DNA of 64,000 nucleotides from Selaginella moellendorffii (taxonomy: Eukaryota; Plantae; Lycopodiophyta): the NCBI RefSeq assembly GCF_000143415.4, contig NW_003314289.1, positions 566,292 to 630,291 on the forward strand. Reading direction: 5' to 3'. Position numbers and translations under genes: made by a program. Shown here in pieces: positions 16,245 to 41,400 of this stretch. The notes below the pieces were generated by a model, which was not told the origin of the DNA, searched no databases, and was given only the letters and a program-made list of their open reading frames with translations. How positions within the stretch are numbered: position 1 is the first letter of the stretch; each line of letters opens with the position of its first letter.

Positions 16245-18990
16245 ATGGGGATGGACGGGCGCCTAGACCTTCTTCCAATGTAAGCTCTTGTGAGATATTT
16301 GGGAAAATCTGTGCATCGCTCGCTTTTCCAGGTATGCGGCAATGTGCAAGCGCCACAAAATCGATCAAAACCCGGCGATCGTCAGAGCTCTCCAGAAGGT
16401 ACTCCTAGGTTCTTATCTCCTAGCCGGGCAATCTCACTCGATCGGGATTCCAGCAATTCGCCGCGGGCGGCGACGAGCTGGAGCTCGAGGTAGGCGACGA
16501 CGTGGGAGAGATCGAGGTTTGCTGCGTCAGGGATTTTCTCAAGCTAGATTTATGGTCGGCGTTGGATTTAAAGATCACAGGCGACTGCTCGAAGAGCTGG
16601 AAGAATAACACGCTTGTAAGTTTCTTGACGGCGTCCAAGGACAGGCTTCGTCATGTAGATCTCAGCGCATGTACCTATCGAAGAGAATTCGTAAGGTCAG
16701 TACTTTTGTTCTTCGTTCCTTGCATTTGTTTCACACTTTCCTTTCAGGTTTCTCTATAGAGTTGGTTTATCCTGCGAGACTCTAAAGCTTGGCCTATGCA
16801 GCGCGCCTACATGGAAGTTTAACCTCGCCGGTGAGTTTCATCGCTTGGAAGTTCTCATAGTGGATCACAGCCGAAGTATCACCCTCTTGTCAAGCACTTG
16901 CTTCGAGGGCATGCCAAAGCTAGCGAAGCTTTCAATGTGTGGCACGGGCATCGTCAACCTTTGGACAACATGTCGTGCTCTTTCCAAGCTGCCGAGCCTC
17001 CGAGAGCTTCGCTTCCAGCGCTGCGTGTGTTGCGAAGGGACTGGCCACTGTATTGCTCCGCCGCCCGACGATTGTGAGGGGAAAAACATTTCAGCCGGGA
17101 GTTCTGGTGATGACCAAGAAGTTGAGAAAATGGAGATTTTTCAGAAGGGGACGGATGAGAGTGACTACTGGGATAGTAGCGGCGATGAAGAAGAGGAAGA
17201 AGAAGAAGAAGAACAGGAAGAATATGATGAACTTGGAGAAGAAGAAGTTGTAGAAAGCGAGCTGGATACTGATCTGGACGAACAGTTCGTTTATCTCGAA
17301 ACTGTGGAACCCGAAGCTGGAAACGTTGCTGATGAACCACCAAAGGCCGAGGAGCGGCAACTAAGCTATCGTTTCCAGTCAACAATATGTCACGAGAAGT
17401 TCTACCGACAGTTTATGATATCGTCACTCCCGAAGCTTCAAGTACTGGATAATCTGGAGATCACACAGGAAAGCAGGAAAAAGGCATGGATAGTCTACTG
17501 CGACAACTTTGAGCGCTCGCCAAACACTCGGCGACGGCGAGAGGGCATTGTGGAGATACTTAAGAGCAGGGAGAGAGGCGGCGACCGGGGGCCTCACAAG
17601 AGGAGGAAAATAAACGAGACGAGAGCTCTGTCTACTTCCAAGCTGTGTGACTGGCCTGCTACAAGCGTCGTCTACAATCCTTGCAAGTCCAACGTGGATA
17701 TTAGCAGGAGACTTAAGCCGCGGCAATTTGAGTACCACCCCAAGGATCCAGCTCTTATGGTTCTCGGGACACTAAACGGAGAACTAGCTGTGGTAAATCA
17801 CGAGGAGGATAGACTGGTGGCTTATATTCAAGCTTCTGCAGTTCAGCACCGCGTGCTGGGATTATGCTGGTGGAACAACGAGCCTGACAAGGTACCCGTA
17901 TATTTCTCTTTTCTTCTTTCCAATTCTTTTTCTTTCGTTTGCAGTTTATAGCAGGTTCTGACAATGGTGTGTTGGAACTTTATAGCTTGTCTCGGATGCG
18001 AGCTGCGACTATGGCGTGCACATATATGTGCGGTTCAGTGCACAGATTTAACGACTTCGAGCAGCTCACCTCCGTTCATATCAATTCGCAAGACGAGCTC
18101 TTTCTCGCAAGTGGCTACAACAAGAATATTGGCCTCTACGATCTTCAAACCGCCAGGCTAGTCAAGGTATTTCCTGATCTTCACGAGGACCATATAAACG
18201 TCGTCAAGTTTGCGCATCACTCGCCCAAGACGTTCGCTACGTCCTCGTTTGACAAAACTGTGAAGATGTGGGACCTTAGAACGACGATGACTTCGCCAGT
18301 TTACTGTACTACCAGTCGATCCGGGAACGTCATGCTGTGTTTCTCTCACGACGACCATTTCGTTTTGGTTTCCGCGGTGGACAATGAGGTAACTTCCATC
18401 TCTTTTGAAGATCTTTACGATCCTGCATTACAGGTAAGACAGTACCTTGCTGCCGATGGAAGACTTCACACGAAGTTCGACATCACACTAGCAAATAGCA
18501 GGCGAAACTACACAAGATCATACTATATGAACGGCAGAGACTACATTATCACTGGCAGCTGCGAAGAAAACCGGATCGGAGTTTACAGTGCTCAAACTGG
18601 AAGGCGACTGAGAGATGTAACGCTGGAGGTAACTTCCCATTTATAGTTTCAAGGCTATAGCTAACTGTTTGTGCAGGGACGAGGTGTAAATAATTCCTTG
18701 TACGTGCAGTCACTGAGGGGTGATCCTTTTAGAGTAAGTCAAGTTCTTACGTCTACTCTTTAGATTCAAGTAGCTAAGATTGCCTCAAACAGGATTTTCA
18801 CATGTGTGTCCTTGCGGCTTACAATCACCCTCACCAGCGATCAGAGATTGTCAAGGTGAAGATACCTTCTTTCTTTCTCTACTCCTGACCCGGGTATCTT
18901 CACCAGATCAACATGGTCGCGTCAAGCAACTACGTCGGGCCTACAGATTCTCAGTCCTCGTTCACTGGCGGAAGCGTCAGCGGAGCATAA
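16245..18990 (+). CDS. DHU1: LRR + WD40 (DWD) protein, DHU1-like CUL4-DDB1 substrate receptor
   Basis: LRR segment (MPKLAKLSMCGT..LPSLRELRFQ), YRQFMISSLPKLQVLDN, KPRQFEYHPKDPALMVLGTLNGE, HINVVKFAHHSP..FATSSFDKTVKMWDLR, NYTRSYYMNGRDYII. Confidence 0.8.
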
Positions 18991-19026: not shown

Positions 19027-20311
19027 CTACTGCAAAGTGATTACTAGACGAGAGGAACTCGCTTGCAGCCGCTTCAAGTCATTGTACATCTGGGGATGCC
19101 GGGCCTCGAACAGCTCCATCAGATTCCACTCCTCACTGTCCTGGAGGAGACGCGAGCAATTCACAGTCAGGACCTTGAGCCCGGGGCAGTGGACGAGCAG
19201 AGCTTCCAGCAGCTCAAAGCATCCGTTCTCTTCGAGAAAAACCGTGGCCTTGACAAGCTTAAGTTTGGCCAAGACATCGCCATCAATCTCCTTACAGAAA
19301 CACTGCAGAAGGAAAGACAGTTTTACACTCAGAAGAAACCGAGCTTTTACGTACCTCGAGCATGTTGCCGCCGAAAGTGATGGTGTCCAGCCGCGAGAGG
19401 CCGTTAAAGAACGTTTTCCAAGCAACAGGCTCCGGGTCCGACACCGAGACATCGATCTTCACCTCGGAGATGTTGGGTACGAGCTCCACAATGCTGTGAA
19501 TCTCCTTAAACTCCCACTCACTTCCTCCCATTGTCAGGATCTCAACATTGTCGAGCGAAACCACGATCAAGTCCTTGCAGCGCGACGGCAAGTGTAACTC
19601 CCGGAGCTCTGGAGCGACAAGAACACAGCTGATCCCGTCCAGCGTGAGGCACTTGAGGTTCATGGTTTCCAGCATGATGAACGGCGGCCCAGTCTCGGGA
19701 CCCTCACGACGATCCACTGCCAAATGGACGCTGTTAACGTTGCTGTTCGTGAGCCTCACTTTGGCGGTCTGGAAGTTCTTGACGACCAGCTTGTCGAGAG
19801 CCGGGCAGTGATTTAGAACCGAGACCACGGCCGGGTGCTTGAAGCTGGAATCGTCGAGAACGCATTCACGGAGGGTGGTGAGATCGAAGTTTAGCATCGG
19901 GAGGAGGAACGCTATCGATCCATGGACTCGCAGGGCCGAGAGTTTTGAGCAGTTCTTCACCAGGTTCCAGAGATTAAGCTCCTTTGTGCTCACATACCAG
20001 AGCTCCAAGTCCTGTATGGAGTCTTTAACTATTTCTATCCAGCTTGAGAGGAGTTCTTCCGGAATGTCGCAGCCCTGGTGGATTTCTATGGCGAGATTCT
20101 TGATGGAGTGGGCGCGGCGGAGCATGGGAGCCACGGCATTGGCGTCGGATTGCTGGGCGAGCATGAAGTGGAGGGAATCGACGTACCTGGAGAGGGATTG
20201 CCAGCGGCGGCACACGGGCGCTAGGGTTGCGATGCTGCGCGCGTCCTTGAGATCGGCGAAGATGGAGAGGACGGCCTCTGCGGGGAGGGATTCGAAGCTC
20301 GCCTCCTCCAT
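19027..20311 (-). CDS. F-box/LRR (RNI-like) protein, two exons
   Basis: FESLPAEAVLSIFADL..LAPVCRRWQSL F-box followed by LRR-like repeats; intron at ~19305-19352. Confidence 0.85.
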
Positions 20312-22361: not shown

Positions 22362-24238
22362 ATGGAATCTCCAAGCCATCCTAATTTCTTTGCCAAAGTC
22401 CTTGCAAAAATCCAGTCTGAGAATACCGAGTTGAAGGCGACCCTTCTTCACATGCAGCAGGAGCTTGCTTCACTTTCGGCTCAAGGATCCAGCAAAGTTC
22501 CAGAACCAAAGGTGAGTTTCCCGGCGAAATTTTCAGGCAAGCGTTCGGATCTTCGTGGATTCCTGAACCAGATGGAGCTGATCTTCGCACTTTAACATCG
22601 ACAGTACCCCACTCCCGAGTCTCAAATCAGCGCAATTGGGATGTTGCTCAAAGGTGCAGCTTTGTCATGGTTTTCTCCTTTTCTGGAGAAGAGCATGAAA
22701 GGGGTCGTGGTTCCGGAGTTGATGGATCTTCAATTGTTCAAAGAAAAGCTCGAAGCATGTTTTGGTGAGACTGATTGGGTTCGGGCTGCTACCACAAAGA
22801 TGAGACATCTCTCTTAGGGGTCTCGTCCTGCCTCAATCTATGCTACAGAGTTCCAACTCCTTGCCTTGGACACTCAGTGGGATGAGCAAGCCTTGATTGA
22901 CCAATTTTGTTTCGGCCTCAACAACGGTGTCAAGGATTTGTTGCTCACCATGGAGGATCCCAAGGACCTATCGGACGCCATCAACAAAGCTGTTCGATGT
23001 GACAATCGTCTCTTTGAACATCATCAGGAAAGTCGTCGCGCCGCTGTTTTTCCGTCCCAAACTCAGGAATCCCAGCTTGAGTCTTCGGGGCATACTCCTG
23101 AACCTACTGCTCCAGTCGCGATGGATATTTTTGGTACTCCCCAACTCATTAGAGGGAAGTTGAGTTCTGCTAAGAAGCAACGTCGAATATCTCATAATCT
23201 TTGCCTCTACTGTGCTGATCCTAATCACAAAGCAGCTTTGTGTCCCAAGAAGCCTCCCCGACTGCTCGAGTTCACTCTGCCTCAAAGTCCACCTCTGTTG
23301 CAGTCGGGAAATGACCTTGTCCAAACAAAGTAGGAGCTGTTCATTTGGACTCCCCAAATAAAAATCACTTTTCTTCTTTATCAAGCTCCTCACCACCTTT
23401 CATCAAAGGCACCACCAATTCCTGCAACTTCTGCATCCCATGTCTCCTTTCTTTCACCGGACAATCAGGACTCAAGGCTCTGGTGCTACTAGACTCGGGT
23501 GCAACTTCCTGCTTCATGGACATGGACTTTGCTACCTGACATCACATTCCTCTTTCTCCTACCATACAGGATCTGAGGGTTGAAGGTATTGGCGGGCATT
23601 TTGTGTCTCCATCTTCTGGAATTAGGGAAACATTGCCCATTCGAGTACACATCAGGTCCACCGTCACTGATATCACCTTCAACGTCATCAACAACAAGTC
23701 CTCCTCTGTGGTGCTCGGTGTTCCTTGGTTCCAACTACATCAGCCTCAGATTTGTTGGAAGGAGTTACAGCTCATCTCTCCCACATCACCATCTCCCACG
23801 GCTTCCCCTGCTATTCATCGAGTCCGAATCAGGAAAAGTTCCCTAAACTCAAATCGGGGTTTTATTCCTGACTCTACGAAGTTTTCACCCTCTTCTTTTT
23901 CCTCTCTTCCATCTTATACTAGACAGTATCCTCGTCTCATCATTCCATTTAGTCGCACGCCTCCTCCTATCTCCACAATCACTATGAAAGAACTCCTTCA
24001 TGAAGAACTTATTTTCCTTTTTGTTTTGCATGTTTCTCCTGTTAGTCTTCCTGAGAAGTATCATGATTTTGGGGATGTGTTTGACAAGAAAAATGCTAGT
24101 GTACTACCTGTTCATCGGCCTTATGACTGTCCCATTGATTTACAGGAAGGAGCGTCACCTCAGTGGGGGCTTATCTATGGGTTATCCCCATCCGACCTTA
24201 AGGCCCTCAAAGAGTACGTGGATGAGAACCTTGCCTCG
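22362..24238 (+). pseudogene. gag-protease-RT(N) of the host gypsy element
   Basis: Several in-frame stops (e.g. 22593, 23537); LPEKYHDFGDVFDKKNA..PIDLQEG..IYGLS. Confidence 0.85.
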
Positions 24239-24680
24239 AAGCTCTATTTCGTTAAAGTGGGAATTGTCATTATCCCACTTGTAAAATAAGGTTTCCAAAC
24301 CTTTATATAGTATATAAATATAACAAAATTCAACTGCATTGAGGCACATGCCATTTTATTTTAAACAAGGAAATGTCTACTCAATCACTTCTCCTCCCCC
24401 TGCCACTGCTTCACCTCTCTCTTCTCCTTGTCATCGTCGTCCAATTTCTTTCCATCCTTTTAATATTGGCTCAGTTGCTCCGAGTCTAGGTGGAGCCCAA
24501 GTCCCCATTCAATCTTTACTTTCCCATTATTAATAAAACAACTTCGTAGACTTCCAATAACATGCTGTAACACTTCTAGTATAATGCAAATCCTCTCAAA
24601 GAATTGTCTTTTAATATTAATACAATTGCATGGAACACCATGCCATAATAAGTTACATTTTTAAATAAATACATGCCATC

Positions 24681-27600
24681 TCAGACTGTTATTTTTTGCC
24701 TCCAACGCCTATACAATAATCTTGGAATTTCATCACTCTCCACACTATCAGGATTTAAACCCAATAGTAATGCCATCTCTTCTCTAATACGTCCACGCTC
24801 ATGTTCAGTGGTCGAAGAACCCATCCGGTTGAGCAGATTATGGAGATGCGGATAGTGCTTGGCTAGACAATATACATGCCATAAATGATGACTGGTGTCT
24901 GTCCGATCAAATGGCTTCTGATATACCGTTCCATCTGCCATTTGGTTGATTTCTGCAGCCACCTCCTGGACTGGCCGGTTCTCTATCACCATCGCTCCAA
25001 GCCGTTTTGCAAGGTCCCCCAGAACATACGGTTTCTTCTCCCTAGTTTCCATACTGCAAGAGATGGGGTGCACTGCATATGTGTGCGTGTTCGCTGCAGT
25101 TTTAATCGGCGAGTCATCGATGATGAGGATTTCACTTGAGCTAGCAGTCCGGTTCATCACTACAGCCTCTGGCTTGACGAAGATGGGCTTGCTACCCCTC
25201 ACATGGACCATAGTCAAGCAATCCTCCTGCGTTAGGAGAAAGTCAAATGGTAATATTACTCGCGTCTGATCGTGCATCATCTGTAGCAACGTTAATGCAT
25301 TGTGGCGCATCATGGATGTCCAAACTCCCAATTGCAAATTGAACCCGGCCCTCTGTTTTAAGTGTCGCATGGTCATTATTAGATCCCGCAGTTTCTCCCG
25401 TGTGATTAATGTGAATCTGTCTCTTTTGACCAACTTGCGACCGCAGGCTTTGGAGGGTGCAATGACATTCGAGGACGAGCCACGCTCATGGGAGAAAAGG
25501 ACACCGTTCAGATCAAAAACGATACAGTACCTTCGCCGTGACTCTGAAATGAAATGCGTCAGCATAAAAAATGGTACAAGTCAATTTTACCATCTACAAT
25601 ATTAGCGAATGTTGCTCCCAATGGTCGTTGAGAGGGTTTTGGTCGAGGAAACGTGAAGGGCGGAAATACTCTCCTCTGCAATGTGGGGTCAATCGCATCC
25701 GATGGCGTGTGGGCACATGCCATTTCAGCTGTAGACTCTGGTACAACTGGCTCAACAGTGGCATGGGGTGGTTCCGATGGCGTGTGATCACACGCCATTT
25801 CAGCTGGTGCCTCCGTTGGCAAAGTGGACATGACCGAACAAGCAGCAGGGGCGGTGTAGGGAGGTTCCAACGGCGCGTAGTCAGACGATTGGGCACACGT
25901 TGAGTCCATTGGAAATGAGGATACGACCGGCTCGGCGGCTGGGGCGGCCTCATGTGGGTCCAATGGCGCCTGGTCACCGTCAGTTGGATACGTGGACAAG
26001 ATTGACTCAGTGGTATGGGCAGCATCAAGTGGAGCGTGGTCAGCTTGCTTGGCGTTGATATGGATAGTAGCCTCCACCAGCTCTGATGACTCTTGCAGCC
26101 AAGTAGAGTCCACTGGCGGATCCATATGCATGTCCAAATATCTCCCTTCGATTGAGATGGTATCCTCCCGTGCTACTAAAAACAAACTCATTAGCACATT
26201 GAATCGACTATACTGTATTTACCATCAACTGCTATTGAGGAACTAGGACCGATATCACTTGAGCGCACTGCTGATTCTGAAGGATTGGACATACGTTTCG
26301 ACCCTTGCTTGGCACTATCCTTCCTCGACACTAAAGGCTAGAGTTTGTAAATTCAACTGAATAATCTCTACTTACCATTTGCTCTGCGACCTACATGGAC
26401 AATGTTAGAAATGGTAAAAGGTTAGGAATGGATGTATTATTATTTACCTGATGGTTTGTCTTGTATGACCTTCCTCCGCCGCTCTTTGGCCACCTCAGGC
26501 TGGCCATCGTCGTCATCATCGTCGTCGTCGTTATTGTGATCGTCACCATTGTGAGGACCATCCAAGTCCTCTTCGTCCTCCTCTTCTTTGTCCTCCTCTT
26601 CTTTGTCCTCCTCTTCGTCCTTCTGCTCTTCTTGCTCATTATCTTTCTCTGGCTCCTCATCCCCCTCCTGCATTTCTTCCATAGGCTGCTCAGGCTGGAT
26701 GGCTTGTTCTTCCAGGACCATCTTGGGAAAATCATCTGGCCGAGTCTCCATCTCAAAATACAAGACATCCATAGCTTGTTTTAGTGCGTGACCTAGGACC
26801 GTATCCTCACCCGACTGTCTTAACATGGTTTCTGCACGTTCTTGCACCCTTCGAAGACGACGAGATGAGAAAAACGTGGCCCTGCCTTGAAAAGCTTCCC
26901 TCATCCATTGTACCTCTCCATTGAGATTGGGGAAGGGGAGTCCGCCATAGGAATCTGAGTCATGAGGTGGTGACTGCCTGCTTTCACTCAGCCCTTGATC
27001 TGCAATGAATGGCATGAGCACACACGCCATAACCGCGAGGCATTACCTATCATCTTTTCGTTGCCCTTCTTCCTTTTCGAATCAAACACCTCTGATCTCG
27101 ACGACTGTCCAACGTGCTTTCGCTTTTTATGACCACTGTCAGTTTGAGCTTGGCTGGTGCTTGCCTGTTTTGCCTTTGAAGAAGTTTCTCCTGCAAGGAA
27201 TGGCATGAGACCACACGCCATTGCAAATATAATTTGTACCTCCTTTTTTCCTATTGCTTTTCTGTTTGTCCTTCTTCGATGCGCCACCAGTGCGCTTTTC
27301 AGTCCTCATGTCTAAATATTCACAACGATCTATAATCAAAATGGCGTGAGGCCTCACGTGACCTTACCTTGTGCAGGTTGTGAGCTCGGCCCAACATGGG
27401 TATCTTCAAAAGTAGCTGTTAACGCCGTTTCAGCATCTGGGGGTGGCCACGCTCCTGCATACAGAGCTTGTGAGATAACATTTAAACTTAAAGTGTGTAC
27501 TCACCAGGTTCGCAGAGAAGATACTGTTTTTCTTTGGCAACTGTAATTATATGCTCCATTGAAGTCATCTCTTCAATGGAGTTTGTCACCGCAACACAAG

Positions 27601-30303
27601 GGACACCCTTGAGTAGTGCGGCTCGAAAGAATAGTCCGCCGCAGTTGTACTCGACAACGCATTTGCCCTTGGAGTCGGAAGCAGATGACCCACCCGCTAT
27701 TGCGTTGAAGACCCAGCTGAGCATTTCCCATGCTGCACCTGGAGCTTTCTTTGGATTCGAAAGCTCCATAGCCGTCTTCAGTTCCTCAGGCACGGGTAAA
27801 TTGACCTCCCTCAGATCAATTCGATTGGCCTTGTCGAACGAAGCTGGGAAGTCACTCCAGTCCCACTCTGCTGCAGGACCAATAACAAGGGCGAGTGTGA
27901 AGATGCGGACATTCGTCGGTATCTTCTTCTTAGCCATTATCCCATGGATCTCCCGCATCTCCTTGCCTTTCAACCGAGCCTTCACCTCGTTCAAGGCCTT
28001 CCAGAACTTGTGATAGGATTCGGAGTCGTAGATCATATAGTGGACTGAAGATTCCACCTCCGCAAGTCCCACCATTAAGTCAATGATGGAGCTGACTTCG
28101 TCTGCATGAGTGATCTCCTCGTTTGTGAAGTCCATCACACAAAAGATGTTCTTGACCTGCTCATCTCCGCGGGAAACGATGCTCCTCCACCTTTGATCCT
28201 CATCCGAATTCAAGTATACCCGGTAAGGTTCTCGATAGGCCTCTGCTGCGGGGTCGAGCTGTTTCTGAAGCCGGCGGTCGACATCAATCTTAATGAAATT
28301 TGGATACTGATCCAACTTCTCAGCTTTACTTTTCGTGGCATCCCGCAGCAGATCGATGAACTTGGGGGCCCCCTTCACGTACTCGTCGATGTCTTCATTT
28401 GACAACTCCAGCGCTTCCATCATCTCTTGCGTGGTGTCGATGCTCACCCTCTCCACGGCCACTTGCTCGAAGATCCAATCCTTCAATAGCGCACGAGCTC
28501 TCAGAGTCGTGCACAAGTCCTCGTATGTCACAATATGGCCGGGAGTCATTTTGGTCTTGTTGAAGACAACCTCACCACGTAGAAGAGCATTAGCCACTGT
28601 CAGAAGGTCGTCATCGTCTAGAGACCGCGAGAAACGCAAGGCGTTGAGCTTCAAATCATTGGGCTTCCGGCCGTCCTCCACACCCATTGAGTTTGGCAAC
28701 TCCCCGTCATGGTACCTCCTCAGCACATCTACCCATTTGTCAAAAACAACTTTTGTCGCGAGTAGAATGTTATGGATGCTGAGTGTGTCATTGACCCCCA
28801 GTGTTTTCGAGAGAAGACTCGAGAATTCCTGCAATGGAAATGGCGTGAGGCCACATGCTATGCCACATGCAACGAGGCTTACCTGCCAGGCGCTAGTTGC
28901 TAGTGCACGTCCTTGTCCTGGTTTTTGTGGCTTCTTCAGTTGAACCCAGAGCTTCCGTGTTCGTGCCAATGTCTCGTGCAGACCCGATTTGTAGCATGTT
29001 TCTTGCTTGACATTCTGCGCGTGGGAGATGTATATGATAGATCGGAGGGGCGAGTTGCCTTTTATCAGGCGGACAACTCTTGTCTTGAAGACTTTCTTCA
29101 CCTCCTCGCCCACCATAATATCCACAACTATCTCTTGCATCGCCAAGCTAGAATGCTGCCCGGAGACGGCATAGAACCGGATGTTCTGATCGTCCAACAC
29201 CTTCCTATTGATCAAGTCTGGAAACCTCGTCTCGCCCTTCATTGTTCGGTAGTAGGGGATCACGTCTGCGATGTCGGGTGTTACTGGACTTGCCAGAACC
29301 TTCTGCTTCAGTTTCTCCACCCACTCATCAGATACTAGCCTGTGGTTGTATTTGCTTTGGATGTCGATACGGCTCACGTCGATTGTATATACATTGTTGG
29401 AATAGTAACAAGTACTATTATCTACGACGATTTTTGCTGCCTCTTCTTGCTCTTTCTGCTCTTTGCGGCTCTTCTTTTTGGTGGGTGTAGTGTTCGAACC
29501 CGAGGCAATGGCATCACTGAGTAGCTTCTTTTTTGGAGCAGGAGAGTCGGACGTCGGCTTGAGCTTGACCACCCTTTTCTGCTTTGAGGTAGTTTCCAGA
29601 TCGACCCCCTTCCCCTTTGCTTCGCGAACTGGAGTCACTCTCAACGGCTCAATGTTGGAATATAGTTTTTGAACATCGCCGTAGGTGAGGTCCGTGGATT
29701 CCATGTGATCTTCATAGACCCGCAGCGTCTTTGAAATTGTGGGCCTCCTGGACAACCTCTCCCTAGCTCCCTCTAGGAATTCCTCATAGCCGCTGCCCCC
29801 CTCCGGGAAGCCGCTAGGATGTGCAAGGTGGATCTTGAAGGCAGACGCTGTCTCTACCACAAGTGCCAGTCCATATTCTTGCATGGAACTGCATGGAGTG
29901 TCTGTCACTTGGATGAGGATCCCCATGCATTCTTTTCTCCCACCATCTGTGTTGTACAGCCTCAGATCCTCGCCTTCTATCCCGAAAGTCCAACTGGTGA
30001 GCTCCTCCCCCTTCTCTGCATCCACATTGACAGTGGCTGGAAGAAGAACGCAATTCCTCGCCTGTTCAGAAATGCACAACAATTAGAGCTGACAGATGAA
30101 AAGCTAGTAGCTGGAAATAACGTGAGGCCACACGCCATTCACCACTGCATCAGATGTCTTGAGGCTGCATCCTAAGATGGCGTGAGGCTACACGCCATCT
30201 GTAACCGGACTGCACTCGAGAGCCCAATCGGTGCATGCCAATGTTGCTACTGAATGGCATGTGGCCTCATGCCATTTTCTACTTGGCCTAAAAGACTTAC
30301 CAT
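24681..30303 (-). CDS. Predicted 11-exon, ~1,640-aa transposon cargo protein: ParB/Srx-like domain + degenerate DNA-MTase-like fold + acidic/Pro-rich linker + FCP1/NIF-like HAD domain
   Basis: ATG|GTAAGT at 30303 splices to 30061; in-frame 54-bp intron at 28829-28882; eight downstream phase-1 GT-AG introns keep the frame open to 24681. Motifs: IDVSRIDI..NHRLVS..FYAVSGQHSSLAM; NPKKAP..VVEYNCGGLFFRAALLKGVPCVAV; IVFDLNGVL, GVWTSM, IIDDSPIK. Confidence 0.7.
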
Positions 30304-30519
30304 TTGAAGCCGAATGGAGGCGTGACAACCGGACTCGCTGGCGAATGTGCACTGTGTGTGCAGCGGATTGTAGCAGCAAGGCTACTCTGCCACTTACAGT
30401 TGGAGAGTGGCGCTGAAATCTCCCGGGACGCCAAGTGGGCTGCGTGTGGGTGGCGGATTGGGCGGCGGAGTTGGCGGCGAAGTTACAAACTGGGTGTGTC
30501 TTGAAGTGGACGCCGATGC

Positions 30520-30675
30520 ACACGAGCGCGATGCGAGCGCGAGTGGACGCCGATGCACACGAGAAACCTGTAGAGAAGTGGGAGCGCGAGTGGGAGCGCG
30601 ATGCGAGCGCGAGTGGGAGCGCGATGCGAGCGCGAGTGGGAGCGCGATGCGAGCGCGAGTGTGCGAGCGCGAGTA
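30520..30675. repeat. CpG-rich tandem repeats (GCGAGCGCGAGTGGGAGCGCGAT-type)
   Basis: Repeated GAGCGCGA units upstream of the cargo gene. Confidence 0.85.
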
Positions 30676-31107
30676 CGAAGCAAAATGCAAAACCTAACCT
30701 CACACGCGCGAAATGTCACGACGGTTGGTAATCCCGCCACGTCATCATTTCTCGGACTTGGGCGCCACCATTAATTTCTGGATCGGCGCGCGCATGCGTG
30801 AAATCCAAAAGAAATCCGCAACGTCATCATTCCTCGGACTGCATGCACGCGAAATCCAAAAGAAAGATCATGATTGGGATATCATTTAATACCCTCGCTA
30901 TATTTATACCATGCATGATTGGATATTCCAAAGCATCTTGTATTTCCAAAAATGCCAGATGTTCAGCTAAATAAATTGTCAGAGGATTTGATGTGACGTT
31001 CAAGCATGTGGGCTCATGCAATTTTGATCCCAAAAAATGCACCAAAAAATGCTCGGCGTCATCTGGCGTTATCTCTTGAATGGCGTGGGGCCGCATGCCA
31101 TTTTCAG

Positions 31108-32945
31108 GAGCACATAGGAGTATATTCCTAGAATATTCTGACACGCGCGAGATTGTTTTGAGTTTCCTGGAGATCCAACCGTTAGATCGCAACTAGATTT
31201 TACAGAATGGTATACAATGTCCTTCTTGATGACCCTGCAAAGAAGCATCTCGATCGGACACCACATGAGACCACACGAGCCTTACAATGTTTCAGGGGCA
31301 TTTGCCATAGATCCGACCGTTATTTTGCTCCAAGATTCTACAGTTTGGTGTGCATTGACCTTTCCATCGACACTACAAAAGGACATCACAATCAGATGCG
31401 GGATCACAAGAAACCAACTTCACTAACTCTGGTTTCACCAAGATCTACGTAAGGAGTTATGAAATGAAAGGACCCTCTCTATTGAAATGTGTTTATGGTC
31501 CTAAGGGCATTGTGACATATCCAAGGATTTTGCATCAAGTTCTGTATTTGCATGTTTATCAAGCTACTGAATTGCTAAACCCTAAACCCTAAACCCTAAA
31601 CATGTGGCAAATGCTGCGTGAAGAAAGATGCCCTTTCTGGGCAAATGCTGTAAGAGGCAGATGCCGAGCAGATGTATCTCAGGCTAGTGAAGGGGACAAA
31701 GGAATGTAAGCAACCAAAGGAATGTAAGTAGGGCATGTGTTTGTAAGTTTAAAAATGCCTCAACCACTTAAATTCCCAAGTAAATAAAGCTGTTTCTATT
31801 TTTGGTACAGGTAAACTTTATAGCGTGTGGGCTCATGCAATTTTGAACCAAAAAATGCACCAAAAAATGCTCGACTAGCATTATTCTTTGAATGGCGTGT
31901 GGCCTTATATTGCCATAAATGACACAGCATAATTATTCCTTTACACGGCGAATAATCTTGGAGCACATAGGAGTATATTCCTAGAATATTCTGACACGCG
32001 CGAGATTGTTTTGAGTTTCCTGGAGATCCAACCGTTAGATCGCAACTAGATTTTACAGAATGGTATACAATGTCCTTCTTGATGACCCTGCAAAGAAGCA
32101 TCTCGATCGGACACCACATGAGACCACACGAGCCTTACAATGTTTCAGGGGCATTTGCCATAGATCCGACCGTTATTTTGCTCCAAGATTCTACAGTTTG
32201 GTGTGCATTGACCTTTCCATCGACACTGCAAAGGGACATCACAATCAGATGCGGGATCACAAGAAACCAACTTCACTAACTCTGGTTTCACCAAGATCTA
32301 CGTAAGGAGTTATGAAATGAAAGGACCCTCTCTATTGAAATGTGTTTATGGTCCTAAGGGCATTGTGACATATCCAAGGATTTTTCATCAAGTTCTGTAT
32401 TTGCATGTTTATCAAGCTACTGAATTGCTAAACCCTAAACCCTAAACCCTAACCCTAAACATGTGGCAAATGCTGCGTGAAGAAAGATGCCCTTTCTGGG
32501 CAAATGCTGTAAGAGGCAGATGCCGAGCAGATGTATCTCAGGCTAGCGAAGGGGACAAACGAAAGCTAGCTATAAACATGACGGGATGCAAATAGATTAC
32601 TAGGCTGGTCCTGCGAAAATCAAAAACCATAATTGAAAACATTGAAAATGCAAAAAGAAAGGTTTATAATATTTTTGAATTTTAAGCAACCAAAGGAATG
32701 TAAGTAGGGCATGTGTTTGTAAGTTTAAAAATGCCTCAGCCATATAAATTCCCAAGTAAATAAAGCTGTTTCTATTTTTGGTACAGGTAAACTTTATAGC
32801 GTGTGGGCTCATGCAATTTTGAACCCAAAAATGCACCAAAAGATGCTCGACTAGCATTATTCTTTGAATGGCATGTGGCATTATATTGCCATAAATGGAC
32901 GTACACACACAGCATAATTATTCCTTTACACGGCGAATAATCTTG
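31108..32945. repeat. Near-identical tandem duplication (units 31108-31960 and 31961-32945), each with a (CCCTAAA)n tract
   Basis: GAGCACATAGGAGTATATTCC starts both units, 853 bp apart; telomere-type tracts at 31575-31600 and 32428-32459; the ORF track shows duplicate peptides. Confidence 0.92.
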
Positions 32946-33269
32946 GCGCGGATCGCTGACATGGCATGGCAAAGTTCGAATCACTGACATGGCACAGCTG
33001 GATCGAGGCAAGGACATGATGTGACAAAGTTCAACCTCCGACAGCAAAGTCTAGAAGCTACTCAGTTTGAAATTTGTCAGAGGAATCATAAGATCTGGTT
33101 TGTCAGAGGATTTGATATGACGTTCAAGCGTGTGTTATTTTTGAATTCTCGAACTCATTCCTAGGTCTATCATTTTTGTGCGCCGTGTTCTTGGTTCCGC
33201 TGAGCGCAGTGAGCGCTGCTTGTGTAAGCGGCGTTGTGAGCTGTGGTTTATGCGTCTACAAGCGGTTGC

Positions 33270-33390
33270 GGCATTGCGAGCGCCATTGCGAGCGGCAGTT
33301 TATGCGAGTGGCAGTTTGTGCGAGCGGCGCTACGAGCAGTTGCGGTGTTGCGAGCGGCGCTACGAGTAGTTGCGGTGTTGCGAGCGGCAC
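33270..33390. repeat. CpG-rich repeats (TTGCGAGCGGC core, ~30-bp unit) upstream of the transposase
   Basis: GCGAGCGGCGCTACGAG(C/T)AGTTGCGGTGTT repeated. Confidence 0.8.
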
Positions 33391-33754
33391 TGTCTTTGGT
33401 GTGGCTACCGCTTCCTCTTGATATTCGGCACTTGTGCTTCCTGGTATGTTCACCATGGAATGGTTTAGGACCACATTTAGAAATGGCATGAGGCCACATG
33501 CCATCTTGGGCCCTTGCAATTTCATGGCTAGCGTATTGTCATGTATGTTTTTACTTGCCTGCAGCTGTGTGTATATCAAGATGGCATGAGGCCTCATGCC
33601 AATTTTGTGAATGCGAAATTTCATGTGGGTGTCAATAGCATGTTTGAATAATGGCATGTGGCCTCATGCTATTGAGGTTGTTTGGTATGTTATGATTTAG
33701 GCCATTCTCCAATCATTTTTTGTATGGTCTTAACTTCTTTTCTGCACTTTCAGA

Positions 33755-36700
33755 ATGGCCTTCAGGGTTGGGGAAAAGGTTTACATTTTGAATGGTGGGA
33801 AGAGAGTTGCAAAAGGGACCCTTGTGTCTATGGATCGGAACTTTGTTATACACTGTCAAAGGCTTGGGGAAGGCAATGCTGCTGTATCAGTAGAGACTGT
33901 CTTCGATGGGAATGTGGTCGCTATTGAACGAGGAGAGATGGTCGTCGGGGTAAATGTTGTTGTTGCCTTGAAAAATCTTCAGAAGAAAGCAGATGTTGGG
34001 GACAGCGCAAGTGCGACGCATGTTCCCTCCGTGGATCTTAAGAACCGTGCTACATGGATTCAGGCAAAGGTGTTTCTAAACAACCCCGAGGGGGAGGTGG
34101 TAGCTGAGGGCTTAGCCACAGTTGTCGATCCAAGAGATGCGGTTGCTAATCAAGAATTGGGCTGGGATGATATTGGAGTTGCAATTTTAGAGGTTGTTGA
34201 CACAGAAGAAAACAGTCTGACTATTGGAAGCATTGTGCGGTGGAAATGGAGGCACTTAGTGTTTGAGAATGTGAAGGATTCACAATCAAACACCACTACA
34301 ACTGATGACAGAAAATCTCTTCATGGGAAAAGAAAGTACACTTTCCTAAAGCGCAGNNNNNNNNNNNNNNNNNNNNNNNNNNNNNNNNNNNNNNNNNNNN
34401 NNNNNNNNNNNNNNNNNNNNNNNNNNNNNNNNNNNNNNNNNNNNNNNNNNNNNNNNNNNNNNNNNNNNNNNNNNNNNNNNNNNNNNNNNNNNNNNNNNNN
34501 NNNNNNNNNNNNNNNNNNNNNNNNNNNNNNNNNNNNNNNNNNNNNNNNNNNNNNNNNNNNNNNNNNNNNNNNNNNNNNNNNNNNNNNNNNNNNNNNNNNN
34601 NNNNNNNNNNNNNNNNNNNNNNNNNNNNNNNNNNNNNNNNNNNNNACCACATTCTACAGAATCAAAACTGAGTTCGAGGAACAAAGGGTTCAACAGGCAG
34701 TCCATGGGAACGACGGTACGCACAAAACCAGGGGTCATGTTGTATATGGAGAGGCAATCTTCAAGAGGTTTGTCGAGACATGTAGCGAGCAGCAACCACA
34801 TAAAACCCGCCTCTTGGAAGATGGAACACGAGACACCCAACGAGTTCTCCCTTCCATGTATACCAAGGGGGCCATATTGGAAGATGTGAATCGGGAACTC
34901 CAGAGTAATGGCTACAGGAAGCTGAGCCAATCTAGATTTAGTAGATTGTGGAGCAACAGGTTCAGGGATGTGAGTATAGGAAAGTACTCCAGCTTTTCAA
35001 AGTGTGACGAGTGCACTGCTATCAAAATGGCTTTGTCGAAGAATTCTTGCAGCGCTCAAGAGTGAGAGACGTTGGTTAGAAGGCGGCTCGACCACAACAT
35101 CGAGCAGAGAAGCTGCAGGACTGCATATTATCATAACAGGATTCTCTCCATGGAGAGACCTGACTCTTACCTCTGCATCATCCACGACAAAATGGATCAG
35201 AAAAAGACGTGCTTACCTCGACTCAATCCTGCCCCCAAGGCAATCTCTTCATCCATGCAGCTGCCTGTGTCTCTGTTTGGCATAATCGCTCATGGGCATG
35301 GTGCCCAGAACTATGGGAACTTCTTTGTGCCTCTATGGGGTGGCGGGGGTGCAAACATGATGATTGCGTCCTTAGCAAAACACTTAAGGTCTCTGCAAAG
35401 TGCGCAGACTGAGCTGAACGGCCAACCCTTGCATAAGGCCCTTGTCGATCGAACCCCATACAGGGTTCAGCTGGAGGAGGAGCAAAGGCTTGCAGTATCG
35501 CGTGGGGCCCCATACCATCCCAGTGAATATGTTGGCCGTCAGATTGTAGGGTTATCACGTGAGGCCTCATGCCATTACGACGAGGCTGGTCGCCCGGTGA
35601 ATGCACAGCCTCATCCAAACGAAGCAGAATCTCAAGGAAGTTCTTGCGGCCGATGTGGCCTTCCACCCCATCTTCTGCTCCAAACAGACAATGCTGGCAG
35701 TGAGAACAAAAACATGTACGTCTTCGCGTACTTGGCGATGCTTGTTGCCAAAGGCATATTTGAAACGGTTACACTTGGCTTTCTCATGGTTGGGCACACT
35801 CATGAAGACGTCGATGCCATGTTCAGTCACCTGGCAGAGTCCCTCCGGCGATCCAATGTCCTCACCCTCCCACAACTCTACGATGAATTCCAAAATTGCA
35901 TCAAAGGCACTGTTGAAGCTGCACTTGTGACAGAGGTTCCAGACTTTAAGGGGTTTGTAAGAGGCTACATCAGGGACGGATCCGAAACGCTGATTGGCCA
36001 CTCCAAGCCTCTTCAGTTTCATTTCAGCATGCGTGACGGTGCTCCAGTGATGAGGTACAAGATGAGAGAATGGGACACAGTGTGGCTGCCAGTGGATGGC
36101 ATTGAACTCTTCAAGAGAGATCCCATAATTGGGGAACCTATGATTCCTCAGGGTTCCCCACGGCCGATGCACCCGGATGGACTCAAAGACCAGGAAAGTA
36201 TAGTGGCCGGGATTAGACAGCATATTGCCTTCTGGAAGAGGGGGTTGGTGTTTGGTGGAGAATCCTATTTTAAGAGGTGCAAGCCTTTGCTCGAATACTG
36301 GGAGAAGATTATATCTGCTATCCAAAATGGGCCGGTTGTATATGAAGAATTGGAAGAGTCCTTTTGGCCAGAACCCAGAGCACCAGATAGTAGCGGAACA
36401 ATGTCCTCTGGAAATGCAGTGACAGATAACGATGTTGAGGATCACTATTGTGGGCCGAGGAACAAGAAGCCGGATTCAGCATTCAATCCAGTACAGGTCT
36501 GCAAAGGAATGGTCGTGCTTGTCAGACCCAGTAATAAAAAACAAATGATATGGGTGGGGCGCTGCATCACTGATGCAGAGGAGGACGCGGAAACTAACTC
36601 CTTCAATGTAACTGTGGAGTGGTTCAAGCCAAGTTCCGGATATACGAAGGATTGCCTAGAAAAGAGATGGGTGCTGAATCCAAGGGATCCCAGCATGAGC

Positions 36701-36823
36701 ATATCGGTGGATAATGTTGTGCATGGTTGGATGCGGAAGCAGAGTGCCACCATCACCTTGCCAGACCATGCAAGAGATGCAGCAAGAGCATTCATAACCT
36801 GGGTTCAAGGTGAGATTCATTAA
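33755..36823 (+). CDS. Sola1-like DDD transposase with one in-frame TGA (35063-35065) and an N gap (34356-34645)
   Basis: FSKCDECTAIK, IIHDKMDQKKTCLP, LLLQTDNAGSENKN, FLMVGHTHEDVDAMFS; ORFs 33755-35065 and 35072-36823 share a frame. Confidence 0.8.
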
Positions 36824-37512
36824 TATTCCTTTACTAAGTTTTTAATGTATTTTATTTCAAGGTGAACAATCCGAATCTGAATCAGAGGAGGCGTGATGGC
36901 ATGTGGCCCTTTGCACTAGTATATCTTAATACCGGTCTGAGAAATAGAATGGCATGTGCCCTCAGGCCTTTTACTAAATCACCTTTGAAAGAAATGCAAG
37001 CCTCTATGTCGTAAAAAAAAGGTACTAGAGAAATTCCTTAATAATATGAATGTTATTTAGTTTCATGAAAATACACTAAGGGTCAAATGAGTTAAATGAC
37101 TTCTCCAGACTAGCAATGCCTCTTGCTACACCTTCACAATTAGATTCGTTAGAAAAAGATAACATTGAATAATATCTAAATGTTCTCACCATTAAGTTAT
37201 ATGTCTGGCTAATAGGAATGACGTTCATCTTGGAAAGCTCACCACACGCTCAATGAACAAACAAATAGTGTGTGCGCGCATGCCATCGCTCTTCTTTAGC
37301 TTCAGATTCGGCTTGTTCACCTTGACAATGAGATTTTTTATACAACCAGATGGACTCAGTCTGGACACAAAGTCACCGCGCTAGTCACCATGCCCCAGAT
37401 ATGTCTAGCCCCTAGACAAAAAACATATAATTTCACGTCATTTTCAAATACTTGAAAATTTGTACCTAGTCCCATTTTACTGAATAAATCCCACTTTAAC
37501 GAAATAGAGCTT

Positions 37513-38450
37513 CTCGGGGTACATTCAACATTCGCAGTCTCCGGTTGGAGCGCTTATCTTCTTTGTCAAGAAGAAGGATGGGAGTTTGCGGGTAGTCATT
37601 GACTATCGAGGTTTGAACAAGGTGACTATTTGGAACCGTTATCTGCTGCCCCTGATCTTGAACCTATTGGAATGCCTCAGTGGTACCCACTTCTTCACCA
37701 AGATCGACCTCTGTGGAGCATACAACCTGATCCAGATCCGGCCTGGTAATGAATGGAAGACTGCATTCCGAACCCGCTATGGCCACTTTGAGTACACTGT
37801 CATGCCATTTGGCTTGACAAATGCTCCAGCAGTTTTCCAACACATGGCGAACGACATCTTTTGGGAGTTTCTTGATCAGATGGTGATCGTCTACCTCAAT
37901 GACATCCTCATCTACTCAAAAACTCAGGAGGAGCATGACAAACATGCATGCAAGGTGCTGGCAAAGCTGCGAGAAAATGGCCTATACATGAAGCTTGAGA
38001 AATGTTCCTTCGATCAGCAGTTTGTAAAGTTCCTTGGGTACATTGTCACTCCTGAGGGTATCACGATGGATCCTGCCAAAATCAAGACTATTCTCGAATG
38101 GGAGCTTCCACAATCAATGTCGGACGTTCAAGTTTTCCTTGGCTTCGCCAACTTTTACCGCAAATTCATTGATCATTACTTTGACATTGTCCTTCCTCTC
38201 ACGCATCTCACTCACAAGGATGTTCCCTTCTCTTGGTCTGCTGTTGCCCAGCAGGCCTTCGACACACTCAAGGCGGCCTTCAGTTCTGCTCCCATCTTGC
38301 TCCACACTGATCCCTCACAACCTTTCTTCATTGAGGCTGACGCCTCTAACTTTGCCATCGGTGCTGTGTTGTCTCAACTCGGAGTGGATCAAGAATTTTA
38401 TCCAGTCACTTTCCATTCTCGGAAATTCCAGCCTGCGGAGATCAATTACA
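37513..38450 (+). pseudogene. RT-RNase H of the host gypsy element (3' half)
   Basis: DYRGLNKVT, KTAFRTRYGHFEYTVMPFGLTNAPAVFQ, YLND(D) motif, EADASNFAIGAVLSQ. Confidence 0.92.
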
Positions 38451-41400
38451 ATCATCTTAGACTCCTCAGACTCCATCTTAACACTTCCACATGTCATTTA
38501 TTGGTCCTCTTGGGTCCCTTTTTTAAAGACTCACAACTTGCTTTATGTTCATTCTTCGAGCACTTCCTTGGGAGTTCCACTCCCACTCTCAACTATCCAA
38601 GTTGAAACTTTTAGTCCAAATGTGTTACGATCATTTAGCTTTCCCTTTGGCCACTACCACATGGCACCCTTTCGGCTCCACTTTGGGGCTTAGGGATGTG
38701 TGTCTCACATAGGGATAAGGGTCAAGTGTTAACTCTCCCCCTTAACTACTCCTACATGGTGGCAACTGCCATTTCTTCCTGAGTTCTGATTGTTAAGATT
38801 GTAATCTTGAGTGTCAAGGTTGTAATCCTGATTGTCAGGAAAATACTCAAATGCATGGTTAATCTATTTTGCTTCACTCTCCCATGACTGAATGGAGCTT
38901 CGTTTTGAAGCTCTTACTGCTCCATTATGGCGCTTGGCTTTGTTGGCGTTGGATTTCCTGCGAGTTCGACTTTGAACTTGTTGAGTCTTTAGTGGAACTT
39001 CTCATCATTGTCATTCTCCTTGTCGTGCTTGTTTGCATTGTCGTCTTCCATTACTACAGGCTGCTCCAACTTCAAAATGCAAATCTCGTTGTGGAGCTCC
39101 ATGTTTTTTAGCGAGCTGGTCGTTGATGTGTTATGTCTCCACATATACTATCCCCTAGAAGGACATATCTCTAGGGTTAGGGTTTTGCCCTTTGCCATGG
39201 AGTGTCAAGTTTGAGTCCTTGTAATAACTTTCTTGAGTTTTCTCTTTATTGGTGTGGTAGTGTTGGAGAAGCTTGCTTCATGTTGGTTTTTGGCACATTT
39301 GTTGATGAGTCTTGTGAGATTTGTTGGTCTCTAAATCTTGCTTTTTGTTAAAGTTCTTCAAGTCATTATTTTTCTTCATATTGCTTTCTTGAGTTTGATT
39401 CTTCAAAGTCTTTTTTGTGTTGGATTTTTGAACTTGAGCTTCATATTTCTTGATTGCATTAAGTTCTTGAGCTTGAACTTTATACACCTTGAATGTGTTG
39501 AATTCTTGAGTTCGAGTCTTTGTAATCTTGATTTCTTGATCTTCATGCTTGTAACTCTTGTTGATGTTTCATTTTTTCTCTTCAAAGTTAAAACCTTTAT
39601 TTCTTTCAAGGTTGTTGTTGATGACATTTGAGTTGTACAATTGGTATTTCTTGAGCCTATTAAGGTGGACGGTTTGGAGATGCTCGCCATCAAGTGTTGC
39701 AATTGTTACCATTCCCAGAGCTTTGAATTCTTGGATGAAGAATAATCCTTCCCATCTTGACTTCACTTTGGAGCCAATTTTCTCGATGTTTCCTTGAAAC
39801 TAGAGTACTTGATCATTGATCTTAAATTCTTCACTTTTCTTTAGTCTTCTCTTTCTGTCATGGTTGGCTTTTCTTTGAGTTTGAATGGCTTCAAGTGTCC
39901 AAATTACTTGTAGTCATTCTTCGTCAAGTTTTCTAGCATTGCTAGTCTTCTCTTGATTGATTCTTCTTGGTTGATCTTGTAGTGTAGTGTTATTTGTAGT
40001 GAAGGAATGATGTACTTGAGTGGTGAGAGCTTCTAAACTGTAAGTAAGCTTGAATGGTATTGAATTTATTGAAACCTTGTATGAAGTTCAATATGCCCAT
40101 AGGGCATTGTACATGTGATCATCTCTGTGTTTTTTATTTGTCTTTATGATTTTCTTGAGGATGTTCTTGAGTGTCTTGTTTGTAAACTCTACTTAACTGT
40201 TGCCTTGAGGGTAATATAGTGTTGAAGCCTTATGCTTGATCGTGAATTCTTGAGTCAGAATTTTGATAGTGTTGTTGAGTTGATGAAGTGTGTCCCTCGA
40301 TCAGTGACAAGTTCTCAAGGTAAGATATATCTTGTGATGATATTTTTGTAGATGAATTTTGCTGTTGCAATCTTTATTGGTTGAGCTTCAGCCCATTTTG
40401 TTATGTAGTCAGTTGCTATGAGGATGTACTTGTTTTGCTTAGAGCTTGTTATAAGTGGTCTAACAAAGTCGAGTCCCCATTGTTGAAATGGTTCCAGTGG
40501 TGTTGTTAGATGAAGCTCTTCATTTTGTTTCTTTAGTGCATACTTAGTTTGTTGAAAAATATTACATTCTTGACAAAATTTTGCTAAGTCATGCCAAAGT
40601 GTTGGCCATCAGAATCCCTCTTACAAAATCTTGCAAGCTGTGATTTCTTTTGCAAAGTGGCCTCCTACTTGTCCATAGTGGGCTTCTTCAAGTAGATCTT
40701 GAGTTTCTTCAGGTTGTACACATCTTCGTAGTATGTTGTCTCATCCTTTCTTGTATAATCTTTCTTCCACGACTGAATATAATCGTGTCCTCAAAATAAA
40801 TTGTTTACAGTGATCAGAGATAGAGTATCAACTTGGTATTGTTGTTGTTGTGAGGTAGTAGTAGATATCATCCATCCATGTTAGTGATGTGTGGATATGA
40901 AGTATATTGTAGTCAAGAAAGTCATCCATGTTGTATTTCAGTTGTTCACCAATTGTAATGTGGCTGAGGTGGTCGTTATATACATGTTATTTGTTGGGTT
41001 TGTGAATAATCTCAAAGTTGTATTCTTGAAGCAATAAGAACCATCGGGCAATTCTACCGGTGAGGAAGGTCTTGTTGAGGAGGAGGTGTAGAAGTGCTTT
41101 GTGATCAACTATGATCTTGACTTTGGTGCCGAGTAGGTAGTGTTGAAACTTTTGTAACTCTAAAATACAAAAGTTACACCACCGATAATTATCAATTGTA
41201 TCCACCATCACCAAAAGAACAAGTTCCAAACAACACCGAAAACATAACACTCATCAACCCAGCAACATCGTATGGCAACATGATCACCTACCTGATTTTC
41301 ATTAAAAGTAAAACTGAAGATGCAGAAAGACATCTTTAATAATTCAACTACATCATCAAAGTTAACCAGTAACATACAAATGAAGCACTTCTTTTTCCTT

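Follow-up and report, generated by a model that had tools for sequence, protein, structure and literature searches.

The 64-kb stretch of the Selaginella moellendorffii genome analyzed here (contig NW_003314289.1; hereafter the window) contains a 13,274-bp DNA transposon at positions 24239–37512, which carries two divergent genes, one for a transposase and one for a large accessory protein. The element ends in perfect 24-bp terminal inverted repeats (TIRs), the left one at 24239–24262 on the plus strand, beginning with AAG, and the right one at 37489–37512 on the minus strand; the window contains the 24-mer AAGCTCTATTTCGTTAAAGTGGGA at these two places only, with no mismatches, where no occurrence is expected by chance. 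On either side stands the 4-bp target site duplication (TSD) CTCG, at 24235–24238 and 37513–37516, and beyond it the two halves of a gypsy pol gene on the plus strand. The left half (23603–24238) covers the junction of protease and reverse transcriptase (RT), the right half (37517–38605) the RT and RNase H, with Pfam matches to RVT_1 and RNase H. Both flanks share one reading frame across the junction (...LKEYVDENLAS|GYIQHSQSPVGALIFFVKKKDG..., the left flank being translated as ...LKALKEYVDENLAS), the element plus one CTCG measuring 13,278 bp, a length divisible by 3. When rejoined, the gypsy protein aligns with the gypsy polyprotein at 55458–58241 of the same window at E 2e-91, with no gap over the junction. 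Because the rejoined RT aligns gaplessly and CTCG flanks both ends, the insertion was precise and duplicated four bases. The 13.3-kb unit is therefore a real cut-and-paste DNA transposon inserted in a gypsy RT. The initial annotation of this DNA had described the perfect TIRs, the CTCG duplication, the exact restoration of the RT upon removal of the element, the movement of the whole unit as one and two divergent genes around a repeat-rich region, all of which the 24-mer search, the reading of the flanks and the RT alignment bear out. Neither the element nor the gypsy RT that it interrupts has a second copy in the window, and no pair of long terminal repeats flanks the interrupted gypsy.

Other copies of the family are found in public sequencing runs. 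The best near-identical homolog of the plus-strand protein, P0002, is encoded on a 3.6-kb contig (L001) that is 97.4–99.3% identical to the window on both sides of an assembly gap. This contig represents a different copy: it is devoid of 33764–34005 and 35888–37378 and stops at the identical last TIR base, after which unrelated DNA (AAAG...) follows. Since L001 is internally deleted and has another flank, the family must have several insertions, including deletion derivatives. Further copies, about 99% identical to that of the window, are present in contigs of other runs from the same organism, and a comparison over 24400–30380 with runs X1, X2 and X19 shows mostly A/T in the window where the others have G/C. 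Together with a CGA-to-TGA stop in the transposase gene and CpG variation in the arms of a palindrome, both described below, this excess of A/T looks like the C-to-T decay of a silenced copy whose methylated cytosines have been deaminated. Taken as a whole, the window copy is quite probably a recent insertion of a two-gene, Sola1-type element.

The Transposase and Its Assignment to Sola1

The transposase gene occupies 33755–36896 on the plus strand (about 1020 codons) and, as judged by Pfam, its homologs and copy L001, is a pseudogene in the window. It starts at 33755, directly after an intron-containing leader, and its frame crosses the assembly gap (34357–34645) and runs to 36823; a possible last intron of 52 nt (36810–36861) would shift the stop to 36896. 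In L001, the flanks of the gap enclose exactly 289 bp of coding sequence through which the open reading frame (ORF) of P0002 continues, and the frames on either side of the gap in the window agree, so that the gap is harmless to the reading of the gene. The frame is interrupted by an in-frame TGA at 35063–35065, where L001 has CGA (Arg), an inactivating CpG transition. Because of this one stop, the window copy is, on its reading frame, unable to provide a full-length transposase. The plus-strand gene of the initial annotation thus stands, with the correction that it is broken. A 47-nt inverted duplication of the putative last exon, including the stop codon, was found by an inverted-repeat search (36857–36903 and 37279–37325; 83%, 375 nt downstream) and could let the 3′ untranslated region fold into a long hairpin.

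The catalytic core of this DDD/E-type transposase lies at 35660–36070 (plus strand), which matches the Pfam family DUF7869 (PF25273) with 147.3 bits against a gathering cut-off of 26 (E 5.3e-43) and contains the D206-N..N-K-N and G-H-T-H-E-D-x-D blocks. In a large protein collection, 79 relatives were found in mosses, liverworts, algae, sponges and molluscs, the best being 41–43% identical, and DUF7869 is present in 77 of them. Over 14 diverse members, D39/D42, D206-N207, N212-K213-N214 and G241-H-T-H-E-D246-x-D248 are invariant or nearly so. The term "DUF7869" was not found in the literature searched.

The initial annotation had read the motif pattern as that of a Sola1 transposase. Majorek et al. 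have aligned RNase H cores, among them that of Sola1-1_AP, which reads ...YSDNCGGQNRNRF... and ...FLERGHTQS (PMC3985635 supplement), and such short published blocks were compared with the transposase by an ungapped BLOSUM62 scan, with z scores against shuffles. The blocks S-D-N-C-G-G-Q-N-R-N and E-R-G-H-T of Sola1-1_AP score best at ORF residues 201 and 231 (z 5.2 and 2.5), in order, and these positions coincide with the invariant D206, N207, N212-K213-N214 and G241-H242-T243, in agreement with that earlier suggestion. The blocks of Sola2 and Sola3 fit less well, the third block giving no fit at all. The TIRs point in the same direction, as AAAGTGG at positions 16–22 is shared, in register, with the published TIR of an insect Sola1 miniature inverted-repeat transposable element (MITE), and Sola1 elements are known to make a 4-bp TSD, in the insect study with a preference for AWWT targets that has been called a hallmark (PMC3845634). 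As the Sola1-1_AP blocks land on invariant residues, the TIR block is shared and the TSD is 4 bp long, Sola1 is accepted as the best assignment of the transposase, within the limits of a comparison of short blocks.

These limits also provide what can be said for placing the transposase in a DUF7869 superfamily of its own, as yet unnamed, whose likeness to Sola1 is confined to a few motifs. The first catalytic block of Sola1-1_AP gave no ungapped alignment to the transposase in the scan, and the known target sequences do not fit AWWT, these being the TSDs CTCG here and CAAT in a related moss element and the right flank AAAG of L001, although these "two and a half" sites are too few to judge a preference. 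Such a superfamily would nevertheless have to share with Sola1 the second and third blocks, on invariant columns and in order, with a better match than to Sola2 or Sola3, the 4-bp TSD of two elements (in the window and in the moss Ceratodon), a TIR in register with that of insect Sola1 MITEs and the two-gene layout of a Sola1 element of the brown alga Ectocarpus. We regard it as quite unlikely.

Structure of the Accessory Gene and Predicted Fold of Its Product

The accessory gene (24681–30303, minus strand) has at least 11 exons and encodes about 1642 amino acids. A likely ATG at 30303–30301 is immediately followed by GTAAGT, and once the introns are removed, 1642 codons can be read without interruption between 30061 and the stop at 24681. 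Ten short canonical GT–AG introns that keep the frame open were curated from the DNA: 30133–30062 (72 nt), 28882–28829 (54 nt), 27504–27455, 27367–27312, 27239–27191, 27046–27000, 26447–26391, 26375–26331, 26222–26176 and 25590–25544. They supersede an automatic intron search without splice-site scoring, which produced an open frame with implausible introns. The second divergent gene of the initial annotation is thus present, with the correction that it is multi-exonic. The 54-nt intron keeps the frame and is for this reason concealed within an ORF of 864 amino acids (27488–30082, minus strand); its 18 residues are missing from a Selaginella relative in the alignment. The 72-nt intron is missing from a contig of run X20, where 30060 is linked to 30133 in agreement with GT...AG splicing. 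A weakness is that the RNA evidence consists of this single contig of 59 nt, from a run whose RNA nature is a guess. Run X19, likewise guessed to be RNA, is colinear with the genome through the introns; it is probably DNA and silent on expression. The accessory gene and the TIRs are intact in the window copy, unlike the transposase.

Relatives of the accessory protein are few and distant. The 864-aa ORF has no Pfam match, and a full HMMER search with it recovered 18 weak relatives among 1.8 billion representatives (best E 4.2e-12), including proteins of S. moellendorffii, Calypogeia fissa and Riccia sorocarpa; Pfam domains were absent from these 18, save for low-complexity noise in a single protein. 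No relatives came from word-based searches, whether with the whole ORF or with residues 225–864. The C-terminal, methyltransferase-like half has its best relative in SELMODRAFT_409495 of the Selaginella genome (GL377575.1, gene at 10001–11425), which is surrounded by host genes (ArfGAP, VQ, Pet100) with no transposase nearby and may be a domesticated or stranded fragment.

Three parts can be distinguished in the accessory protein. The N-terminal part of the ORF, residues ~224–361 (29000–29413, minus strand), is predicted to adopt a fold of the ParB/sulfiredoxin (Srx) type and contains the motif FYAVSGQHS; it is followed by a helical part resembling the ParB helix-turn-helix (HTH), to about residue 535. 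An AlphaFold2 (AF2) model of residues 200–864, built from a 16-sequence alignment, has a predicted local distance difference test (pLDDT) score of 80–93 over its first 410 residues and is poor beyond, with values below 50 in the methyltransferase-like part; AF2 with the single sequence of the ORF gave no usable model (pLDDT 31). In the exhaustive structural search VIA, the top eight hits are all ParB/Srx (Z 6.1–9.6), among them PadC (Z 9.6), KorB (8.9), the ParB of pNOB8 (8.3 over 211 residues) and Srx (7.4). Foldseek returns Noc and ParB with probabilities of 0.97–1.0, none with an E-value below 0.001, and in the Atlas nine rows out of ten are bacterial or phage clusters with ParB_N + HTH_ParB. 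In the alignment, the family motif F-x-A-(I/V)-S-G-Q-H-S stands at the position of the ParB nucleotide-binding motif. Several results speak against a ParB-like module: Pfam ParB_N has no match in the accessory protein even at E 10, the family profile finds neither a ParB nor a methyltransferase among the sequences of the PDB, and the GxxR-type arginine motif of ParB is replaced by (A/V)SGQHS in the family alignment. The single hit of the profile in the PDB (E 0.001) is an unrelated cytochrome. The module is thus supported at the level of the predicted fold.

The second part, a putative Rossmann methyltransferase-like remnant at the C-terminus of the ORF (27512–27793, minus strand), is a weaker prediction. 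It has a VVEYNCGG sequence resembling motif I in the alignment, an Atlas lead and VIA scores of Z ~5 to assorted Rossmann methyltransferases, obtained on the low-pLDDT portion of the model. Counting against it, the DPPY-type position reads DFTN, DLRR, DSAN, DATT and DFAR in five aligned relatives, and the accessory protein has no match to the Pfam family of beta-class N6A/N4C methyltransferases (PF01555); this part may be a degenerate remnant and remains doubtful. The third part, encoded by the last exon (25083–25529, minus strand), is a NIF/FCP1-like HAD phosphatase domain recognized by Pfam (PF03031, 27 bits against a cut-off of 21.8, E 4.2e-06). Its motif IVFDLNGVL departs from the catalytic DxDx(T/V), the second Asp being replaced by Asn. 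Because this Asp is the general acid/base, an ordinary phosphatase turnover by the DxN domain is doubtful.

The Spacer and the Palindrome Array

Between the divergent genes lies a repeat-rich spacer of 3.45 kb (30304–33754), in which a unit of ~820–980 bp is present in ~2.2 tandem copies (31003–32949) along with short tandem repeats, telomere-like CTAAACC runs, six palindromes and the introns of the transposase 5′ leader. The CTAAACC runs (the complement of the plant telomere unit TTTAGGG) occupy an equivalent place in both units, at 31575–31601 and 32428–32460, and may serve as promoter elements of the telo-box kind. Just upstream of the accessory start, at 30582–30672, a GC-rich unit of 23 nt, GAGCGCGAGTGGGAGCGCGATGC, is repeated in tandem (3.9 copies).

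A motif search revealed an array of ~17 copies of a 22-bp palindrome, ATGGCRTGNGGCCNCAYGCCAT, between 25702 and 36970. They occur throughout the element, those nearest its ends being 1.46 kb and 0.54 kb away. Introns of the accessory gene contain five of them, and its 5′ part another two to three. The spacer together with the transposase leader accounts for six; a Pro/Ala-rich exonic linker and the transposase ORF have two each, and the transposase 3′ region has one. A cluster at 33483–33672 stands just upstream of the transposase start. Half of the ten curated accessory introns consist of little beyond splice sites and one palindrome. Variation among the copies falls on the two arm CpGs (CG to TG/CA), and the ancestral palindrome was probably ATGGCGTGAGGCCTCACGCCAT. 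The two copies in the exonic linker belong to a 75-nt tandem duplication (25698–25806) that is apparently translated (..AEMACDHTPS.. / ..AEMACAHTPS..).

No copy of the palindrome occurs in the 50 kb of the window outside the element, where none is expected. This remaining DNA contains a DHU1-like WD40 host gene (16845–18646), an F-box/LRR gene (19292–20311), a hAT transposase ORF with DUF659 and the hAT dimerization domain (49244–51190) and the second gypsy element (55458–58241), which has an open gag-pol of 927 amino acids.

Related Elements in Mosses and Liverworts

A counterpart of the whole element was found in the moss Ceratodon purpureus (CM026428.1, around the DUF7869 protein KC19_7G136300; locus L004). 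The Ceratodon element is 13.8 kb long and has 29-bp TIRs (26/29) starting with AAGGG and a perfect 4-bp TSD, CAAT; its TIRs and those of the window both start with AAG and have TATTT at positions 7–11 in common, and its transposase is 33% identical to that of the window. Upstream of this transposase, on the opposite strand, are two ORFs with NIF domains (E 1.9e-13 and 1.2e-9; 50.9 and 38.5 bits), one of which reads LVLDINDLL, the identical Asp-to-Asn change as in DLNGV. A 625-aa ORF adjoining them has no similarity to the ParB-like protein. Judged by these sequences, at least the Selaginella genome and a moss have a NIF-containing two-gene layout in common.

Dyad arrays were compared at five loci, namely the window, the Ceratodon locus, a transposase locus of the liverwort Calypogeia fissa (L005) and the loci of ParB-like homologs in Riccia (L002) and Calypogeia (L006), and each of the five has a lineage-specific array. 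The Ceratodon element contains 27 copies of a different dyad, GTCGGC-N5-GCCGAC, all at 2420–15694 and inside the element only. At the Calypogeia transposase locus, where no TIR could be defined, there are nine copies of another 20-bp palindrome, TCACGAACCATGGTTCGTGA; one of these is located between two segments of the transposase ORF, and a cluster (7030–7478) stands just upstream of the transposase start. The loci of the ParB-like homologs have split dyads of their own, AAACCTCACGC-N4-GCGTGAGGTTT in Riccia and TTGCCTCGAGA-N4-TCTCGAGGCAA in Calypogeia, one copy being intronic. The Riccia sorocarpa dyad (CM100799.1; at 2619, 3024, 8607, 8657 and 12971) is built from the half-site GCGTGAGG, which recurs as the inner half-site in the window palindrome; in Riccia the halves are reversed in arrangement and 4 nt apart. 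With the family profile, no ParB-like ORF was detected at the Ceratodon and Calypogeia transposase loci. Conversely, no transposase is detectable within 10 kb of the ParB-like loci of Riccia and Calypogeia (L006), and no DUF7869 gene lies within 10 kb of the accessory-homolog loci of S. moellendorffii and Riccia.

These relatives bear on the nature of the minus-strand gene, which the initial annotation had taken for cargo. As Pack-type cargo, picked up from the host by chance, it would have no role in the element, and the S. moellendorffii homolog of its C-terminal half does stand among ordinary host genes. Yet the Ceratodon element has a gene with a NIF domain and DxN in the matching position and orientation, ParB-type partner genes have been reported in algal transposons (PMC12477816), and in the window the accessory gene is intact although the transposase is broken. 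Because opposite-strand genes of this kind occur both in Ceratodon, with NIF domains, and in Ectocarpus, with a ParB/methyltransferase protein, the second gene is better regarded as a family-conserved accessory gene than as a passenger, and its capture by chance seems very improbable.

A Possible Role for the Accessory Protein and the Palindromes

ParB proteins classically bind palindromes as dimers, and the palindromes of the element may likewise be sites bound by a dimeric protein that the element itself encodes. We consider the chances about even that this binder is the ParB-like accessory protein, the transposase being a possible though less probable candidate. Once bound, the accessory protein would mark or compact the element's own DNA, and the occupied array could assist the synapsis of the distant ends of a 13-kb element or counter silencing in a VANC-like manner. 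The DxN HAD domain might bind, rather than turn over, a phosphoprotein, possibly the C-terminal domain (CTD) of RNA polymerase II (Pol II). The sites may be located in introns and the spacer since no other DNA of the element would tolerate them. The window copy itself would be mobilized in trans and depend on its sister copies. In its broadest form, this proposal sees in land-plant Sola1-like elements a system of self-recognition, in which a ParB-like/FCP1-like protein binds lineage-specific palindromes, shields the element from silencing or folds it and co-evolves with its sites across mosses, liverworts and Selaginella; in this form we hold it tentatively, short of an even chance.

A difficulty for self-recognition through the accessory protein is that DUF7869 genes at loci with no ParB-like gene detected, in Ceratodon (L004) and Calypogeia (L005), are also accompanied by arrays, so that the transposase could be what binds them. 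The palindromes may accordingly be binding or regulatory sites of the transposase, comparable to the subterminal and internal motifs of En/Spm or Ac, with the ParB-like protein otherwise employed, and the clusters just upstream of the transposase start, both in the window and at the Calypogeia locus, would suit such sites. This explanation is weakened by the ParB-like loci of Riccia (L002) and Calypogeia (L006), which have dyad arrays of their own with no transposase detectable within 10 kb, by the spread of the palindromes over the element with no concentration near the TIRs and by the classical affinity of ParB dimers for such sequences; we deem it rather unlikely. A further explanation is that the palindromes act as RNA, or are relics of introner-like hairpin insertions that created short introns. 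The five accessory introns with hardly any other content are in line with this, as are two introns that fold better than shuffles (z −2.5 and −1.7). As these two are the only palindromic introns to do so, an RNA role is not favored; in addition, five introns are free of palindromes, many of the sites lie between genes or in exons, the arrays of related elements differ greatly in sequence and split dyads with spacers of 4–5 nt suit protein dimers. We consider this explanation improbable.

The finding that each lineage examined has its own dyad array suggests a transposon-encoded, sequence-specific system of self-recognition. If real, such a system could account for the continued mobility of very large DNA transposons or for their escape from silencing.

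Comparison With Known Systems

Several known systems resemble parts of the Selaginella element. The VANDAL21/VANC system of Arabidopsis, reportedly described by Fu et al. in 2013 and Hosaka et al. in 2017, is an anti-silencing system. It has in common with the Selaginella element a sequence-specific protein encoded by the transposon and short motifs in its own non-coding DNA, both changing together between lineages, such a role being only putative in Selaginella; it differs in belonging to the Mutator superfamily, in that VANC is not known to be related to ParB and in its motifs, which are ~9 bp long and non-palindromic. Bacterial and plasmid systems (ParB-parS, KorB, Noc) are similar in the predicted fold of the N domain and the helical DNA-binding part, and in their palindromic sites for dimers, putative in the case of Selaginella, whereas the Selaginella protein has no sequence-level match, no arginine-rich motif for binding cytidine triphosphate and no ParA partner, and would act in a eukaryotic nuclear context. 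The FCP1/SCP (NIF) phosphatases of the Pol II CTD share the Pfam NIF match above threshold and the signature of the HAD fold; in contrast, their DxDx(T/V) is replaced by DLNGV in Selaginella and DINDL in Ceratodon.

The Sola1 superfamily, which reportedly goes back to Bao et al. in 2009, shares with the element the D-N-x-G-x-x-N-(K/R)-N and G-H-T blocks, the 4-bp TSD, the TIRs and AAAGTGG at TIR positions 16–22. Insect Sola1 elements are 2–3 kb long, with one gene and AWWT targets, in contrast to the 13.3 kb, two genes and TSDs CTCG/CAAT found here (PMC3845634). Sola1 has been listed for Physcomitrella (PMC9033089), and fusions of ParB, HTH and methyltransferase have been catalogued in chlorophytes and chytrids (PMC4738411). 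A published parallel is Sola1-1_Ec32 of Ectocarpus, which is 21.5 kb long and has an opposite-strand gene for a 1104-aa ParB-like + N4C/N6A methyltransferase protein, proposed by its authors to bind and modify its own element (Dinatale et al., Genome Biol 2025; PMC12477816). Both are giant two-gene Sola1 elements with a ParB-type gene on the opposite strand. The Ectocarpus protein has a recognizable methyltransferase, whereas in Selaginella this part is degenerate and an FCP1/NIF-like HAD domain has been added, in a protein of ~1642 amino acids; the host is a brown alga, and palindrome arrays are not mentioned in that report (PMC12477816). The suggestion of the initial annotation that the family may be undescribed therefore holds in part. 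The giant two-gene layout of Sola1 was published in 2025 and the superfamily is listed for Physcomitrella, but in the literature searched no report was found of land-plant members of this kind, of an FCP1-like fusion with a conserved DxN or of palindrome arrays located largely in introns. The Selaginella element widens the range of giant Sola1 transposons with a ParB-type gene, described recently from algae, to include land plants, where the partner gene of two related elements, in Selaginella and Ceratodon, has an FCP1-like domain with a shared alteration of the catalytic motif.

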